64,000 nucleotides of DNA. It comes from Amoeboaphelidium protococcarum X5 (taxonomy: Eukaryota; Fungi; Aphelidiomycota). This document shows, piece after piece, positions 19,590 through 44,231 of this stretch. A program made the translations under genes and the position numbers. Position 1 is the stretch's first letter, and every line of letters starts with the position of its first letter. The notes beneath the pieces are model-generated. The model was not told where the DNA came from, did not search any database, and saw only the letters and a list, made by a program, of their open reading frames with translations. Location: assembly GCA_023515725.1 (NCBI GenBank), contig JALDTO010000098.1, positions 398,164 to 462,163 on the forward strand, given 5' to 3'.

Positions 19590-20610
19590 TTTAAACCGTC
19601 TGGAGTATGCGTCATCGCAGTTGAATCAAGTCTTAGAAGTGAACCCAGAACGCGCAGCATGACGTTCAGTCTTGAGCGAGCAGAGTCTAGATAGTAGAAT
19701 TTTCGGCCAAGAAATTCTAGAAACTAGAATGTGACAGTACATTGAGTAGACAACGTGCGAGAACTTGAAAACTGTTTAGATATGTCGTATTGACCATACT
19801 GAAACATCTGAAGTATTAGCCAGCGAATGTTCAGCATGACTTTTGGTGAAGAGGGATCAGTTTCTAGTTATTAGAATATCACCGCCGCACGACACTAAAT
19901 GTTAACCGAGCTATTGCACAGATTAGAATGTAACAGCGCACTGAGTAGGCAACATTAAAACACTTGAAAACTACTTGAATATACTCTATTGACCATACTG
20001 AATCATCTAAGGCAGCCAGCGAGAGCGCAAGATCAGTGTTGGGGCTGTGAGAGATAAGGCTAGATATTGGAATATTATGCTGAGAAAATCTAAAACTTAG
20101 AATGCGACAGCGCAGTCAGCTGGTAACTTCAGCAAACCTGAAAACTACTTGTATATATCATATTGCCTATACTGAATCACCTTAGGCAGCCGGCGAGGGC
20201 GCAGCATCCGTTTTGAAGCTGTGAGTAAGCAGCCTAATTTTTAGAATATCCAACAGAGAAATTCTAAAGGTTAGAATGTGACAATACAGCGAGCAGACCA
20301 GTTCACCACACTTGAAAATTACTTAGACATACAAGATTAAGCATATCAAATCACCTACAGCAACCAGCGAATGCGCAACATGCGTATTGATGTTGTCTGC
20401 GCGCATTCTAATTCCTAGACACACTGGCTCGCGCGACCTTACTTAGAGTTTACTGGGCGATTTTAGCAGTTAGAATGGAACAGCACATCCAGTGGATAAC
20501 TTGAACACAGTTGGAAATTACTTGGAATATATATATTTAACCATACTGAATTTCCCAAGCGGTCGGCAAATGCTAAGCATGGGTTTCGCCGTTGTGAGTG
20601 AGCAGTTTGA
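19590..20610. repeat. Diverged tandem array B, 174/199 bp units, ~5.5 copies
   Basis: TAGAATG at 19725, 19924, 20098, 20272 and 20471, each followed by variants of ACTTGAAAACTACTT and TATTGACCATACTGAA. Confidence 0.85.
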
Positions 20611-34475: not shown

Positions 34476-35033
34476 TCAATCGTCCACCTTATTAATACCA
34501 AAGAACCTGACCAGATGGAGAGCTGGAAGTTTTGCAATCAACACAACAATCAGTGGAATGATGTTGATGATAAACAGAGTGGCATCATAACGCGTGTAAT
34601 GAGTACTCAGCAAGAACATGAATATAGGCAGTGCGGTGAGATACTTCTTGGCCGGTGTAAACTGCTGTCCATCATCAATCTGTTCCCACAGCGTGAGACC
34701 TGCATACTCTCCCTGATCTGCATCGAACGGTGTTCCAATAATCATATGAAATAGAATAAAATGTCCCTACATATTAAAAAATTTATTTCCTTGATAATTG
34801 TATACTCTAAATAGAACAATATAAATATTTACAGTCAGGTAGGATATGTTGGTGAGTGTCCACGCGATTTCTGTGGATACTGATGGAATGATGCCAAATG
34901 CAATTCGGAGTATGAGGATGACCAGAGCGTTCATAGTCCATGCGCCTTTACTATTCACCCACGTAGAATTGGGATTGATCATGGAAGGGTAGGATGATGA
35001 TCCCTTGGTTTTAGCGATCAAATCTGATATCAT
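34476..35033 (-). CDS. ORM1: ORM1/ORMDL sphingolipid regulator, 163 aa; exons 35033-34833, 34766-34476
   Basis: NSTWVNSKGAW, AWTLTN, GTPF, LTLWEQIDDGQQFTPAKKYL, AKLPALHLVRFFGIN. Confidence 0.95.
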
Positions 35034-35664
35034 TTTTTTCCCTCAATAAGATTATGCAATTGATTTGAAATAGATTTTTTATCAATTTTGGTGAAAGAAG
35101 GCGAAATGATAATTTGTGTAAGAATGATTGCACAACTGGCGCAAAGGGTGAAAACCAGATTCACACGGGAGGACTAAAAGTATTAGGAGTAACGGATTAA
35201 AATGTATTAATAATCGATTCGCGTTTTCAGCTCTATTTTGCCTTTAACTTAGATAAAGGCACTCAAGTTGTTGGGGAGTCAGTTCATCGCAATCTTACAG
35301 GAAACTGATGTCGCGCTTAAGCACTATCCAGGGAACTAAACTGATCAGAAGTACTTTTCAGTTGAGGTGAATACAAGATCTCTTTAACGACTCGCACTTT
35401 GAAGATATGAACTTATAATTGGAAGAATATAAAGACGTCGTTTATATACCGTACATATAGACATCTACGCGATTTGGAGCGTGTCTAAACGTACTGTATG
35501 TGTCAATGTTTCGACTCCCTTCGATGATTGATCCACAGAGCTAACAAGTGTATGAAGTGATGAAACATTATAAATAATCAGTGCTATGCAAAACAATATA
35601 TTTGTACATAAAATTCATTCTAAAATGCAATCAATTAAAAATAATAGCAATACACAATATACCA

Positions 35665-38013
35665 TCACTGCTGAGACTTGAAAGTCTGAGTTACGAGAGA
35701 GTCAAGACGGCAGATGGCAAGGAAGATTTGCTCTTCCAGTGAACGACAGATTCTCTTTTTCAACTGATTGACCAGAGATGTGCCCAATAATCTGTAAGCA
35801 AAGTCGTGGCTCGAGTCGTGCAGATTTATGCGCAACGCGTCAATGTTCACCTTAATGTCCACAGGAACCAAGGTGGTGTACCACAGATTGGTGTCAATGG
35901 CAGTCTTCGTTGTGATACTCAGTCCATTTCCACTTAAGAAGATGTCAGCAAGTCCAGCGTCGCGCAGAGGCGGAAATCCTCGCTTGTTGATTGAAAACTC
36001 CACATTGCGCAAATCAGCCTGGATCTGGTACACATTGACATCCACGGCGCTAATGTAAAAAGCACTAGGCAGATTGGGGCGGGGAGACATTTGAATGTTA
36101 TTCGTAAAGTTGACTTCAACCAAATTAGGCAAGGCGCTTTCCAATGAAATGACAATATTGTCGAAAGTGACATCCATATTTGCATCAGAGATTTCAATTC
36201 TTGGTAGAGCTACAAACTTGAATGTGGACGCAATTATGGGCAAGAACACCTGTCTCAAGTCCTGAATCAGATCCTACTTCAAAGTCACCTAGCCTGATTG
36301 AGGATCCATCAGGATAGACTGAACCACCTACCATCCAGATTAGTAGATTGCATTCAATGCACGATCGGACTGCAGGCCATTCAGAATATTTTACAATTCA
36401 AACACAAAGCTGTTGATCAACTGAGGAATCTTGGTACCAAACAGCTTTCTACCATCCTCAATCAGGCGGATAGACTTCAGAGTGTATTCTGGACCATTCA
36501 AGTAGCCGGGATCATCCATACAACGACTAGAAAAATACTGCAGAGATTCCAAATAGTCCCTAGTCTCCCAATCCTGTGTAATGAACAATTAAAACTAATC
36601 AATGACGCGTATCAGACCATCCAAGGAATATCCATTTGCAAATCTTTACACCAACTGCTTAAGATCTTCAAGCATAGCAGGCCTATTCGCTTCATAGTAC
36701 GACAGAGGAATAGTACGATGCATCCTGTGATACTCCCTACCAGTCACTGCACCAAGTTCCGCAGCCATACGAGCAATCAAAATCACAGCTTGTAGCAACT
36801 CTGGACTTTACTGCAGCGATTACAGGATACTGCGTAGAGACTCGGCAACTAGGGCCGCTTGATCAGCTGTTAATGGTGTGCGTAAAGCTGATGCATAATC
36901 TCTCATCATTGGTTACGCAGAAGGTGCTTAGAATTGCAGGGGACTTGGAGCATTCTGATCGACTCGCACATACATCTGCTCTCCGCCCACCGTCGTTCCA
37001 CCGCCACCATTTCTCATTGACGCAGCCTAAGATTACATTGGACGTTATTGCTAAGGCTCAGGCATCGGAGATTGGGATTACTATGAATTGCCAATCATCT
37101 CCAGCAGTCCGCTAACTTCAGTGCCGGATTTCAACAACTTTCCCAACTACATTAGAATTTTCATGACATGCTGCTACTGGCCACCTCTACCAAACTACTA
37201 ATCAGGCATTCCATACTGAGATATGCGTTACTTCACCTGAGCCGTAAACATTGAAGATAGATACGCGTGCTGCAAGAAACTCTGCAACTTTTCATCATAA
37301 TTCTTCTCCTGCAGCACCTGTCCCAATACCTGGATGAATTACTGCACATTGATCAATACTTCCGCTGATGCTGGTGACAAATTCCCACCATACATGGAGC
37401 GATTGATAGAAAAGTTTAGCCTTCCGATAAGCTCGTGCAAAAACTGGTTGGTTGGAATACGTCCCTGCATAAAGATTTCCTATACTTGCATCATGAATCT
37501 TCTGGAGTCCTAAATCTCGCGTTATCTCATTAAAGATAGTGTACCATATGCAGGATTGGTATACGGCGACTGACGTCTTCCGCGGGGAGAATTGGCAATC
37601 GAGAGCAACACATCCTTGGGTGTGAATCCATAGTAGTAGTGATCGCTGTACGGACCAATTCCATAAGTTTACACAAAGTTACTAGGATAAGCTTGCGGTG
37701 CCATGCCAAGTTTGCTTGCGTAATAGGGCATCATAAATGGATACGGTCTCTGCATAGGACCCGGATTGAACGCTGCCGTATGCGTCTTCACTTCCCTATT
37801 TAACTGAGCCTACGCTGTCTGTGATTGCTCCTCTTTGCGGCGAGGCATGAGAGCAATTTTAGGGCCTTTACCGGCGCCTTTTTGGGGCATCACCCCATAT
37901 CCTTGATATCCTGGCTGAGGGTGTTCAGTAATGTTGCGCGCTCTCAGCAGTTGCTCTTACACGTTTTCTTCAGTCCTTGGAGCAGTTTCTTGCGCTTTCC
38001 ACTGATTATCCAT
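35665..38013 (-). CDS. HAM1-like/DUF4449-type protein, 782 aa
   Basis: GRIPTNQ...EKNYDEKLQSFL N-terminal block; LPRIE...DNIV and IQADLRNV.F...GFPPLRDAGLADIFLSG.GLS C-terminal block. Confidence 0.75.
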
Positions 38014-38423
38014 ACCTTATTAGTGATAATGTATTTTAATATGACCAGTTGAATTGGATTACAGATAATTCAGACTGAAAATAGGTAAAGCCAGTATCCA
38101 TTTTATGATATCATGATATAACACCACCAACTTTGCATGAACACTTCTAACTCAGGGATGACCGCCACATCAGTCACCAAGTGAGTCCATAACTATCCAT
38201 GTGTTTCAAATAAAGATTAGTAGATACTATTAGATAATTTCCATGTTAAATAAATATTTACTGCTTATTTGTAAAATTGTTCAGTCCAATACACTAAAGC
38301 AACTCTACATACAATATTTGACACACTAAAGTAACTCTGCCTAACAAAGTGAGAGAAGACGCGCCTCTTAAGATTTATTTCAATATCATCAGCGGATAGA
38401 TATAATAAAATCCGAAGTACAAT

Positions 38424-39179
38424 ATGAAGACGCTACTGATATTAAGTGGAAAGGGCGGTGTTGGTAAATCTTCAGTATGTGGATAATTGGCGTTAGCATT
38501 ACACAGCCGCGGTCTAAGAGTGGGAGTACTTGATGTGGATCTTTGCGGTCCATCAATGCCACTGGTATTTGGCGTACCTTAAGCATCAATAGAATAATCA
38601 TCGAATAGCTGGGTGCCTGCTCAGGTGGCAGATGGCCTTTATCTTATGTCTATCAATTTCCTACTCTAAGACAAAGACACTGCTATAGTGTGGCGTGGTC
38701 CTAAAAAGACTGCAATGATCTCTCAGTTTATCCGCAATGTAGATTGGGGTCATCTCGATTACCTGCTCATAGACACGCCACCTGGAACATCCGATGAGCA
38801 TTTAGCTGTACTGGATGCGATAAGGAGTAATCAGGATTAATATGCATTAGATGGCGCAATCTTGGTCACTACTCCGTAGTAAGTAGCGGCCGCAGATGTT
38901 CGTAAAGAGTATAATTTTTGCAAAACAGTCGGAATCCCTGTGCTCGGAGTCATTGAGAATATGAGTGGATACAAGTGCCCACATTGCTCCGATTGTACGG
39001 ATATATTCAGCTCTGGTGGTGGATAATCGCTATCTTAAAAGTATAATATTCCGCTGCTAGGCAAGATTCCGATTAATCCGCAGTTGGCATAGATGATGGA
39101 TGAAGGGTCTCTAGTTCACGACTTTACCTCTCTCTCCACCTGTGACGATTTCAAGTCGATTGCTTCCGAAATATTATGA
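38424..39179 (+). CDS. CFD1: Cytosolic Fe-S cluster assembly NTPase Cfd1/NUBP2, 251 aa
   Basis: [45 protein letters not shown]; lacks the Nbp35 N-terminal ferredoxin motif. Confidence 0.93.
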
Positions 39180-39414
39180 TTCTTCTTGTTACAAAATAAA
39201 CTATATGTAATTTTAAATTGATAATGTGTTACAAGAGGTTCATATTTAATTACATCTTTCATTTAGAAAGATACTGTTGATAAACCATCCCTGATAATCA
39301 TAAGCAAAGTGTGCCATTCTTTTTTTTCTCACACATGCTACATTGTTAAAGCAAATAAACAAGCCCATGTTGAGAAGTGTGAGTGACTGGATAAATGACG
39401 TCATCGAACGAGCC

Positions 39415-40112
39415 CCCAGTAACAGTGTTATTCATCGACCAAATAGTCAAACATAAGTCTGATAACTCAAAACTGAGTGCGCTGGTTGCTGATGACTATA
39501 ATTAAGATAGCCAGCGCAAAGCCGGAGGAGGAATATCGTTTTTTGTAACAACGACATGCGAATAACACTTTGTTACTCCAAGAACGCGTGCCCAGTAACA
39601 AAGTGTTATTCATCGACCAAATAGTCAAACATAAGTCTGATAACTCAAAACTGAATACGCTGGTTGCTGATGAATATAAAAAGTTCAACCAGCGCAAAGC
39701 CGGAGTAGGAATATCGTTTTTTGTAACAACGACATGCGAATAACACTTTGTTACTCCTCCATCGCGTGCCCAGTAACAAAGTGTTATTCATCGACCAAAT
39801 AGTCAAACATAAGGCTGATAACTCAAACATAAGATTCGCTGGCCGCTGATGACTATAATTATGATAGCGGGCGCAAAGCCGGAGTAGGAATATCGTTTTT
39901 GTAACAATGCCAATGGGAATAACACTTTGTTACTCCAATAACGCGTGCCCAGTAACAAAGTGTTATTCATCGACCAAATAGTCAAACATAAGTCTGATAA
40001 CTCAAAACTAAATGCGCTGGTTGCTGTTTAATATAATTAAGATAGCCAGCGCAAACCGGAGTGTATACCGTTTTTTGTAAACAATGCCAATGGAATAACA
40101 CTTTTGTTACTC
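39415..40112. repeat. Tandem array C, 176-179 bp unit x4, each unit bounded by 17-bp inverted repeats
   Basis: CCCAGTAACA at 39415, 39591, 39769 and 39948; consensus unit starts AGTAACAAAGTGTTATT and ends AATAACACTTTGTTACT (small indels in the outermost copies). Confidence 0.95.
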
Positions 40113-40315
40113 GATGAATGCGTTCCGCTTTGAAACGTTCGACCGGTTTTGTCGTGTTTTACTTTCCCAGTTTCGTCTTTTACGCATTCACAGTTCAGTT
40201 TAGTTCATTTAATTAAGAACAGTGTGAGTTTCTTCCTCTTTACTCTACTGCAAACTTTTCACCATTATCGTTTACATTGGTCTGGGAGAGACTTTAAATA
40301 TTCTATCCAAAAAGC

Positions 40316-42916
40316 ATGCCAGCATCCTAGCCTGCTACTGTGATGGATTAGGTTCCAACGTCTGGTGACTTGAAGCATCATAAGAGAAATAATACTGGTG
40401 CTCGTGGCCAGAAGCATAACTAGGTTGAGCTGACTAAGGAGCAGTGGTAGCACTGGAATGAGCTGATGAAGCAGGATGATATCAATGTCAACACTGTGGA
40501 AAAATCTGTGGTCAAGCATGCACTGACTACTCTTGCCAGGACTCCTTACAATCTGGATGGACTTGCTGCGTACCAGTCAGTTGCTCATTCTGTCAGAGAC
40601 CAGTTGATCAGTCGCTGGAACGAGACGCAAAACTACCACACCGCCCAGAATATGAAGAGAGTGTACTATATGTCTTTGGAGTTTCTGATTGGTCGCTCAC
40701 TGGACAATGCCATCTTGAATATGGAGCTGAAGGGAACGTACAAGGATGCAATGCGTCAGTTGGGGTTTGATTTGGAGAATGTGATTGAGGAGGAGGTTGA
40801 TGCTGCTCTGGGTAATGGTGGACTTGGTCGTTTGGCTGCTTGCTTCATGGACTCGTTGGCTTCTCAGAATTATCCTGCTTGGGGTTACGGTCTGCGTTAC
40901 AATTATGGTATTTTCTAGTAGCGTATCATTGATGGTTTCCAGGTGGAGTTTCCTGACTACTGGCTGACTTACGACAATCCTTGGGAGTTGCCTCGTCTGG
41001 ACGTTACGTATGATGTGCGTTTTAATGGTACGGTTCAGCGTGAAGTTGATGCTAATGGTAAAGCCAGGTGCAGATGGGAAGGTGGCGATGTTGTTCAGGC
41101 CGTTGCTTACGATGTGCCTATTCCTGGCTGGAAGACCAAGAATACGATCAACATTCGTTTATGGCGCTCTGTGCCAAAGAAGAAGTTTGACTTGGCTTCC
41201 TTCAATGAAGGTAATTATCAAAAGTCTGTTGAGGAGAACATTAGGGCTGAGAACATCACCTCTGTCTTGTATCCTAATGATCACACCATGGCTGGTAAGG
41301 AGCTACGTTTGAAGTAGCAATACTTCTTCTGCTCAGCCACCCTGAGAGATATTATCCGTCGCTTTAAGAAGAAGAATTAGGATTGGAAGTATTTCCCGGA
41401 CCATGTTGCTATTCAGTTGAACGACACTCATCCAACGTTGGGTATCGCTGAGTTGTAGCGTATTCTGGTTGATGAAGAAGGCTTGGAATGGGATGCTGCT
41501 TGGGGAATTGTGACCAAAGTGTTCTCCTTCACTAATCACACTGTGTTGCCTGAGGCGATGGAAAAGTGGTCAGTGCCAATGTTGCAAGAGCTGTTGCCAC
41601 GTCATATGCAGATTATTTTCGATATTAATCTCTTCTTTTTGCAGAATGTGGAGAAGAAGTTCCCGAATGATCGTGATCGTCTGGCTAGAATGTCTATTAT
41701 TGAAGAGGGAATGCCGCAGTTTGTGCGTATGGCCCACCTGGCTATTGTTGGATCGCACACTATCAATGGTGTGGCAAGTATTCATTCCAGTTTGATCAAG
41801 TAGACTATTTTCCAGGATTTTGTCAAGTTTTATGGCGATGAGAAGTTTTAGAATAAGACCAATGGTATCACGCCTAGAAGATGGCTGCACCAGAGTAATC
41901 CTGATTTGAGTGATTTGATTACAAAGACTTTGGGTAATCAGGACTGGCTGAAGAATTTGAGTTTGTTGAAGAATCTGAAGAAGTTTGCTGATGACCAGCA
42001 GTTCTAGTAGAAGTGGATGCAGGTCAAGTTGGAGAACAAGATCCGTCTGGCCAATTACATCAAGGATAATAATGAAATCGATGTTGACCCGAATGTGATG
42101 TTTGATATCCAAGTGAAGCGTATTCACGAGTACAAGAGACAGTTTATGAACATCCTGAGTGTAATCCATCGTTATTATCAATTGAAAGCAATGACTGAAG
42201 AGCAGAGAAAGGGCGCTGTTCCGCGTGTTGTTATCTTTGCTGGTAAGGCTGCACCTGGCTATTACATTGCAAAGTTGGTTATTAAGTTGATCAACTCTGT
42301 GGGTGATGTTGTGAACAATGATCCGTAAACGAGCAAGTATCTCAAGGTGGTGTTCTTGTAGGATTACAACGTGTCCTTGGCTGAAGTTATCATTCCTGCA
42401 AGTGATATCTCTCAGCACATCTCTACTGCTGGTACTGAGGCCAGTGGTACCTCAAACATGAAGTTTGTGCTGAATGGCGGGTTGATTTTGGGAACTCATG
42501 ATGGAGCAAATGTGGAAATTGCCGAGGAAATCGGGTCTGAGAACATTTTCAATTTTGGATTGAAGGCTGATCAAGTTGAAGAGGCTAGACATCAGTAGCG
42601 TTATAGAAAGACTCCGATGAACAAGGACCTGGCTGCAGTACTATCCCAGCTGTAGAAGGGAGCATTTGGTAATGCTAAAGTTTTGCAGCCTCTGTTGGAT
42701 ACTCTGACTGTTGGAGGAGACCATTACCTGCTGTCTGTTGACTTTGCGTCCTACTTGGATGCTCAGGAGCGTGTTGACAAGGCATTCCAGGATAAGAAGA
42801 AGTGGGCCAGAATGTCGATTCTGTGTTCAGCCGGCATGGGCAAGTTTTCTTCTGACAGATCCATTCAGGAATACGCAGAGTAGATTTGGAAGATTAAGCC
42901 TTGTGCTCTTCCTTGA
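40316..42916 (+). CDS. GPH1: Glycogen phosphorylase, 866 aa
   Basis: [45 protein letters not shown] motif [10 protein letters not shown]. Confidence 0.97.
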
Positions 42917-43098
42917 AAGTGACACGTGGGATGATTTTATGGACATGGGCGTTTAGGAATGACTGGGTGATATTTTGAAATGAGAAGAAGGCGAATGAAC
43001 AATTTTATCAGTGTGGAGGAAATGAATATTAATGCTCAAAATTATTCTGTATTTCATCATTGTCGAATATTAGATATTTTACAAACCGCAAATCATCA

Positions 43099-44231
43099 TC
43101 ACATTATACCTGAAGTCTTTAGCGAGTTCTTAATCAACGTATCCTTTACAGCGGAGAAGACAACCTTGATTTACTTGGTGTCGGTAGCGCATGTCAAATG
43201 AGGATAGATGGTGAGTCCTTGATGATTTGACTATTTAAATCTCCATAGCATAAACTTGGACGCCTTGGTAAAATCATCATCACCCGCATATTCAGGAAAG
43301 TACTTGTTCAAAGGAGTCTTTTTAATTTTCTCCTTGAACAGATCAATCTTATTCAAAAATAGAATGAAAGAACTGTTCACAAACCACTAGCTGTTCACGA
43401 TAGCCTCGAACAAGATGATGCTCTCTGCCATACGGTTTTACGATGAATCCTCCAACAAGACTTGATCATATTCTGACAGCGCGACTATAAATATCACAGA
43501 CGTGACATTCTCAAAGCAATGGATCCACTTCTTTCGCTCCGACCTCTGCCCGCCGACATCATACATTGTGATATTGAGTTTATCAAGCACAAACTTGGTC
43601 TCGGTTATACCAGTAGATTTGACACGCGATTTCAATACGTCATCCTCACTTGGAATGTAATCCCCAGAGGCCACCCTTTCGATATTGTCAAAAAAGTACG
43701 GAGCAGTGTCCATAATGTAGAACTCGTTGCTCCTCTCGAAAGCTCGTTTTACCGCAGCGTCGATCCACACGGCCTTGATCATGTCACCCGTCGGTTTGTT
43801 GATCGTGGCGTCCATTGCACTGTACTTCACACCCGTCAACTAGCGTGCAATTTCTACACATTCAGGATTCTCAAACTGATACTCGAATCGCTGACATGCC
43901 TCAATTAATGCCTTGATGCTGTCGTAGATATTCTTGCAAATGATGGGTTTGACGGACAAGAGTTCATCCTTGCTGTATCCGTTCATGAAACAGATTCTCA
44001 TTTGTTTCACAATCGTTGATTTTCCAGATTCTCCGGCTCCTACACTAACGATTAACACACAGCGGTCACTTTTTAATCATGAAATCTAATCAATAATGAG
44101 CTCTTACCTAATAATAAAATCTTGCATTATTTAGTGCTCTGGCTCTTCTTTGCTTCCTCTTGCAGATACTGATTGATCTTGGCAGATTACTTAATTTACT
44201 CCGACTATTCTTGAGATAGACAAAGGCCCAT
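43099..44231 (-). CDS. Heterotrimeric G-protein alpha subunit (fungal group III/Gpa2-like), 354 aa; exons 44231-44108, 44039-43099
   Basis: MGLC acylation start, [38 protein letters not shown]-terminal LKTSGIM. Confidence 0.95.

Follow-up and report, generated by a model that had tools for sequence, protein, structure and literature searches.

The window analysed here is a stretch of 64 kb from Amoeboaphelidium protococcarum (C98:398164-462163), part of an assembly of 23.6 Mb in 346 contigs. All 12 of its open reading frames (ORFs) of at least 150 amino acids are exons of eukaryotic genes, and the DNA is therefore that of an intron-rich eukaryote; Pfam matches assign window exons to a subtilase, an insulinase, a HAM1-like protein, a RhoGAP/MyTH4 protein and a glycogen phosphorylase. 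The genome of this species is duplicated, with quartets of paralogues (PMC10608142), and the contig has homeologous counterparts in C142, which is ~92% identical to C98 in exons, and in C245 (~97%). Upstream of the glycogen phosphorylase gene, whose exons carry the Phosphorylase domain (Pfam E-values of 2e-24 and 5e-43), lies a short tandem array that ends ~190 bp before a block conserved between homeologs and ~340 bp before the ATG (Table 1).

TRF reports a single array with a period of 178 bp, 4.0 copies and 87% matches (score of 1060), in agreement with the tandem units of ~177 bp that an initial, sequence-only reading of the window had described, and a search with the family profile by nhmmer gives four matches on the plus strand with E-values between 1e-45 and 1e-56. 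The unit opens with AGTAACAAAGTGTTATTC and closes with its exact reverse complement, GAATAACACTTTGTTACT. These arms, recognised before as terminal inverted repeats of 17 bp, are perfect over 18 nt on the left of units 2-4 and on the right of units 1-3; they are separated by 126-127 nt inside a unit and by exactly 16 nt over each junction, and the head-to-tail arrangement of the units thus creates 18-16-18 palindromes at the junctions. As single-stranded DNA, a junction composed of right arm, 16 nt and left arm forms a perfect 18-bp hairpin of -14.7 kcal/mol (z of -7.7 to -9.5), and the arm itself contains a mini-palindrome, TAACA-AAG-TGTTA. Both the array and its inverted-repeat structure are real and lie far above chance. 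The unit is non-coding, with a period that is not a multiple of 3 and no ORF common to the units.

The three linkers between units in the window follow the form CC-NNNNN-CGCGTGCCC, with AAGAA, TCCAT and AATAA as the five letters, as had been proposed from the sequence; the additional claim that only these 5 nt vary fails across the family, where other linker positions vary too and the five letters fall into two shared types, TCCAT and AAGAA-like. The TCCAT type is present at loci A, B, C and D. Since the linker is carried by every copy, solo or arrayed, it is part of the repeat and not captured target DNA. Linkers of the AAGAA/AATAA type (39578-39593 and 39935-39950) contain the palindrome ACGCGT, which we take to be the MluI cell-cycle box of fungi, and the TCCAT type reads TCGCGT at this site. 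Another palindrome, ATGACGTCAT, immediately precedes the array at 39395-39404 and is retained in the C245 copy.

Table 1. Coordinates of the array, its parts and the family members elsewhere in the genome. Positions without a contig name are those of the window; the borders of units 1-4 follow a register chosen in the analysis, left arm first.
Feature	Position	Strand	Remarks
Tandem array, 178-bp unit x 4.0	39415-40123	.	TRF, repeat finding, nhmmer
Unit 1	39418-39593		
Unit 2	39594-39771		
Unit 3	39772-39950		
Unit 4	39951-40128		
Left arm of unit 1, AGTAACAGTGTTATTC	39418-39433		16-nt variant without AA
Left 18-bp arm of unit 2, AGTAACAAAGTGTTATTC	39594-39611	+	repeated at 39772-39789 and 39951-39968
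Right 18-bp arm of unit 1, GAATAACACTTTGTTACT	39560-39577	+	repeated at 39738-39755 and 39917-39934
Right arm of unit 4	40093-40111		variant with additional T
16-nt linker, CCAAGAACGCGTGCCC	39578-39593	+	
16-nt linker, CCTCCATCGCGTGCCC	39756-39771		
16-nt linker, CCAATAACGCGTGCCC	39935-39950		
Linker-like array ends	39402-39417 and 40112-40127		
Inner inverted repeat of unit 1	39479-39517	+	GCGCTGGTTG at 39479-39488, TAGCCAGCGC at 39508-39517
Donor segment	39600-39785	+	unit 2, TCCAT linker and first 14 nt of unit 3
Homeolog-conserved block (92.5%) and first coding exon of glycogen phosphorylase	40316-40918	+	ORF 40466-40918
Locus A	C98		window array, 4 units
Locus A	C245		0.75 unit abutting another satellite
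Locus A	C142		two solo units 6.26 kb apart, each joined to one of the two flanks
Locus B	C98:482k		~2.4 units, two full (one diverged) and a partial
Locus B, homeolog	C142:606k		~4.3 units, 3 full and two partials
Locus C	C200:60k		5.0 units
Locus D	C154:709k		1.05 units
Decayed solo unit	C179:216k		

Family members and their insertion sites

Genome-wide searches by BLAST with several units, by the 18-mer pattern and by profile returned a family of about 20 units at about 8 places. Copy number differs between homeologs, with 4 against 1 at locus A and about 2.4 against about 4.3 at locus B, which is the expected outcome of unequal exchange, and the phase of the array differs among loci A, B, C and D. 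The 18-mer has 32 genome matches at up to 2 mismatches, all of them in family loci (the match on C179 being the right arm of the decayed solo unit) except for that at C214:707784, a single unexplained match with no family unit around it. Outside this genome, two pattern scans of metagenomes, for the junction palindrome and for the two arms spaced as in a unit, returned no relatives.

The surroundings of two loci deserve description. At locus A, comparison of C142:551400-564100 and C245:198000-207900 with window positions 34881-40316 indicates that the homeologs are rearranged around the repeat: on C142, a patch of the 177-bp satellite and a HAM1-like segment lie between the array flanks, 6.26 kb apart, and on C245 the partial unit abuts the 177-bp satellite, which is followed by the HAM1-like segment. 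The repeat is located at the breakpoints of a larger rearrangement or segmental duplication. At locus B, a Sec10-like exon on the minus strand of C142 (607473-607817), covering the end of the N-terminal domain and the start of the helical bundle, points to the array; between the exon and the array nothing obviously codes for the other ~580 aa of the Sec10-like protein, and the gene either runs on across the array through short exons or a long intron or is a gene fragment.

For two of the loci, the flanks of the repeat are contiguous on a homeologous contig, and filled and empty sites could be compared. At locus D, the sequences on either side of the C154 copy adjoin each other on C205; the filled site reads AAACGTGAT at the left and AAAGTGTTG at the right junction, 179 bp apart, and the empty site has a single AAACTTGAA. 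The solo copy at C154:709006-709191 is 96.8% identical by BLAST to the donor segment of the window array (Table 1), and it has both the stem variant specific to unit 2 and the TCCAT linker. Since its flanks are 84-91% identical to C205, the insert is younger than the duplication and was copied from the window array or its allele. At locus C, the two sides of the C200 array are directly joined on C158; here the filled site holds 895 bp, or 5 x 179, bounded by (A)TTCATCT and TATCATAT, where the empty site has a single TATCATCT. Segregating variants are common to the five C200 units and to units of the window array, and it was therefore a multi-unit piece that moved and not a monomer that was amplified in place.

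The family has colonised at least two new loci (C154 and C200) as whole-number multiples of the unit, and the two events have much in common. The breakpoints of both insertions are internal to the left arm (positions 7-14 and 13-20) and not at the arm end; in each, a 6-9-bp imperfect target homology to the left arm is duplicated at both junctions, and the truncated first and last units sum to one unit. Only two such filled and empty pairs exist, and their polarity rests on the similarity of insert to donor (97%) exceeding that of the flanks to the homeolog (84-91%); precise loss of the insert, by exchange between its duplicated stretches, would look no different. The junction pattern fits the signature that would be expected of a looped-out or circular piece of array that reintegrates, unlike that of a transposase-mediated MITE insertion.

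Arm conservation and the origin of the array

Comparison of distant copies (locus A with locus B, and locus A on C98 with locus A on C142) indicates very uneven divergence along the unit, the 36 arm positions being 94-97% identical and the 126-nt core 59-63% (Fisher p of 2e-6 to 1.5e-4), and the suggestion that the inverted repeats are special is borne out. The flanking intergenic DNA is 56-78% identical between homeologs at locus A and 78-87% at locus B, so that, at locus A at least, the arms are conspicuous. Across 14 family units the arm is invariant or near-invariant, with its outermost two positions the least conserved, contrary to transposon termini; two old solo units have decayed arms. 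From this pattern the inverted repeats appear to be the constrained part of the unit, and we infer that the arms would be needed for the persistence of the family, whether as a site for a protein or as a palindrome prone to breakage. The arm contains AACAAAG, presumably an HMG-box-type core. In the solo unit at C142:552853-553023, both arms lack 2 nt at roughly mirrored positions (AGTAACAGTGTCATTC and GAATAACATTGTTAAT), and the left-arm deletion is common to unit 1 of the window and to C245; the mirrored deletions, a single anecdote, may reflect arm-to-arm correction or coincidence.

Taken together, these data suggest that the locus is probably a short euchromatic array of a low-copy, dispersed satellite of nucleosome length (178 bp) with palindromic unit ends, non-coding and not an RNA gene, that has spread by reintegration. 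The units are head-to-tail, their number has changed between homeologs, and the inserts are whole multiples of arbitrary phase with microhomology at their junctions, all of which is satellite-type behaviour. We propose that unequal exchange between homeologous arrays would change the number of units, that pieces of an array may be looped out via exchange between units, probably as circular DNA, and that a single recombination or template switch, guided by microhomology, could return such a piece to the chromosome, the palindrome at the unit junction favouring breaks or switches. The inverted repeat would be retained as a protein-binding or structure-forming element on which the persistence of the family may depend. 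Against the satellite explanation counts the size of the family, about 20 units being very small for a satellite, and the strong conservation of the arms is not explained by neutral satellite dynamics alone.

Of the origins named in the sequence-only reading, the closest is a tandemly amplified MITE, in which the arms would be 18-bp terminal inverted repeats (TIRs) recognised by a transposase and the linker would be target DNA trapped between adjacent insertions. The family is dispersed and was mobile, its perfect 18-bp inverted repeats are the best conserved part of the unit, as expected of transposase binding sites, and like the MITEs and MITE-derived satellites reviewed in PMC12628747 and PMC9659126 it has an AT-rich unit of ~180 bp, a MITE-like size, with terminal inverted repeats in tandem; transitions from transposable element to satellite are well known (PMC5932611 and PMC12628747). 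The insertions, however, are not those of a MITE: both datable ones have their two ends within the left repeat, contain linkers and comprise whole multiples of repeat plus linker, so that the copies are not bounded by TIRs, and the solo copies all contain linker sequence. The datable insertions show no fixed-length target site duplication (TSD) independent of the element, because what is duplicated (about 8-9 bp) shares homology with the left repeat of the element itself, and the low conservation of the outermost two repeat positions is the opposite of what transposon termini show. Nor was an autonomous partner, or any longer element with these inverted repeats, found genome-wide by the 18-mer search at up to 2 mismatches, which misses partners sharing fewer than 16 of the 18 nt; the Tc1 region at C98:192000-201000 gave no profile match and, with up to 4 mismatches allowed, nothing that resembles an arm, and the search for a transposase with matching TIRs, as advised in that reading, came up empty in both. 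We consider a MITE unlikely, and at best a remote origin of the unit.

It is also unlikely that the array is a cis-regulatory module kept by the host, with the palindromic arms and the ACGCGT linker as putative transcription-factor sites upstream of genes. In both homeologs one unit lies 187-188 bp from the conserved 5' block of glycogen phosphorylase, with 35/36 arm positions identical between the two in surroundings of 56-78% identity, and at 3/4 loci a gene of the same orientation starts within the next 700 bp downstream, although proximity to a promoter is the rule for intergenic DNA in a compact genome. The near-absence of the 18-mer elsewhere in 23.6 Mb argues against a general factor site, one recent copy sits downstream of eIF5A, and copy number varies freely from 1 to 4. 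A cis-regulatory role upstream of glycogen phosphorylase could be a secondary exaptation, and as such is compatible with the satellite explanation.

The 18-16-18 palindromes also resemble lox/FRT or Crypton-type sites, and together with the circle-like signature of the insertions they led us to weigh an array of site-specific recombinase targets, already named as a candidate before, whose units a tyrosine recombinase would move as circles. Enzymes of the lox/FRT type exchange strands in the spacer between inverted arms, whereas the two crossovers found here differ from each other (arm positions 7-14 and 13-20) and neither falls in the 16-nt spacer; the fixed crossover of lox/FRT/attC/Crypton-like sites is thus not seen. 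Moreover, the duplicated stretches are imperfect homologies to unrelated targets and no recombinase gene is linked to any locus examined, and we regard this explanation as quite improbable.

The sequence-only reading had placed most weight on an inner inverted repeat, which exists (GCGCTGGTTG and TAGCCAGCGC in unit 1), and held that its stem keeps pairing as the sequence changes, under selection on RNA or ssDNA structure. In an alignment of 14 full family units, the stem (columns 65-74 with 94-103) pairs at 80.0%, against 79.5% in shuffles, with 245 of 500 shuffles as high; a double change is seen in one pair, where 0.7 would be expected, and the covariation score is 0.172, against 0.167 in shuffles. 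RNAalifold favours another inner helix, with a covariation term of -0.3 kcal/mol. The variants TT to CC on the 5' side of the stem and CCA to GGG on its 3' side are not opposite each other and occur in all four combinations, with both in A_u3, CC alone in C200_u2 and C245, and GGG alone in C200_u4; the 'perfect' stem of unit 2 is due to G.U pairs altered on one side to G-C/A-U, and the stem of unit 3 has to shift its register to pair. The 3' arm of the stem falls where the unit is least conserved (columns 91-100, 0.63) and is missing from diverged copies. The pairs of the 18-bp arms are invariant across units and, since they never vary, are uninformative on structure, and the z of -4.2 of the single-strand fold of the whole unit relative to shuffles is due to the perfect inverted repeat alone. 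A search of Rfam 15 at E up to 1 over 36000-44000 gave 0 matches, and ARAGORN found no tRNA-like genes in the window. For the inner hairpin, then, we see no evidence of selection on an RNA or ssDNA fold. A polycistronic array of structured ncRNAs, for which the better-than-shuffled fold of the unit might have spoken, is highly improbable, being ruled against by covariation at shuffle level, the empty Rfam and tRNA scans, the loss of the 3' arm and the insertion of copies in either gene context.

Comparison with other satellites

The closest parallel to a satellite spreading in this way is found in the Rsp-like and 1.688 satellites of Drosophila (Sproul et al. 2020, PMC7403614). These too form short arrays of complex monomers among genes, in which unequal exchange alters copy number; the truncated first and last monomers of their new arrays add up to one monomer, the junctions show microhomology (4-7 bp or more in Drosophila), and spread by extrachromosomal circular DNA (eccDNA) has been proposed. 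Unlike them, the aphelid family is tiny, at about 20 units, carries an 18-bp inverted repeat at each unit end and has entered unique DNA instead of another satellite; circles are here proposed from the sequence. The TCAST satellite of Tribolium castaneum (PMC3411249; PMC11610590) is similarly present as monomers to tetramers in gene-rich euchromatin, often near genes, but unlike the aphelid family it has a huge pericentromeric source array, and some of its copies are embedded in transposon-like units that have inverted repeats and 3-bp duplications of the target. Neither a composite unit of this kind nor a large source array was found in the aphelid genome.

The window itself holds three tandem arrays of near-equal period, at 1-481 (177 bp), 19965-20283 (174 bp) and 39415-40123 (178 bp). 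The first two resemble the 178-bp family in their class of unit length and in having internal palindromes, although no two of the three arrays are significantly similar in sequence, and the similarity of the 178-bp unit to the other two scores within the shuffled range. The core ACAARGTGT occurs 11 times in the window, where 1.3 are expected, and 10/11 occurrences are in the 177-bp and 178-bp arrays; this 9-nt palindrome core is common to 11-372 and to the arms of 39415-40123, in satellites that are otherwise unrelated. The near-equal periods may reflect a shared nucleosome-length constraint or a shared origin, for example from mononucleosomal circles. Among the palindrome-bearing satellites of this genome, the 178-bp family is newly described here.

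It is improbable, in our judgement, that the arms are landing sites for a putative dedicated protein, such as a domesticated transposase, an HMG-type factor or a recombinase, that would loop out units as circles and aid their re-entry at arm-like sites. If this were true, the family would be a protein-assisted, circle-borne mobile satellite, and the putative arm-binding protein could explain both the ~177-bp period and the ACAARGTGT-type palindromes in unrelated satellites.

With no covarying RNA hairpin and no ncRNA array at the locus, a false lead has been removed. What the family provides is a clean sequence-level record of the spread of satellite units in a lineage next to Fungi, in which the duplicated genome supplies empty sites that make the insertion junctions unusually legible, and in which one insertion, that on C154, can be traced to a particular unit, unit 2, of the window array.
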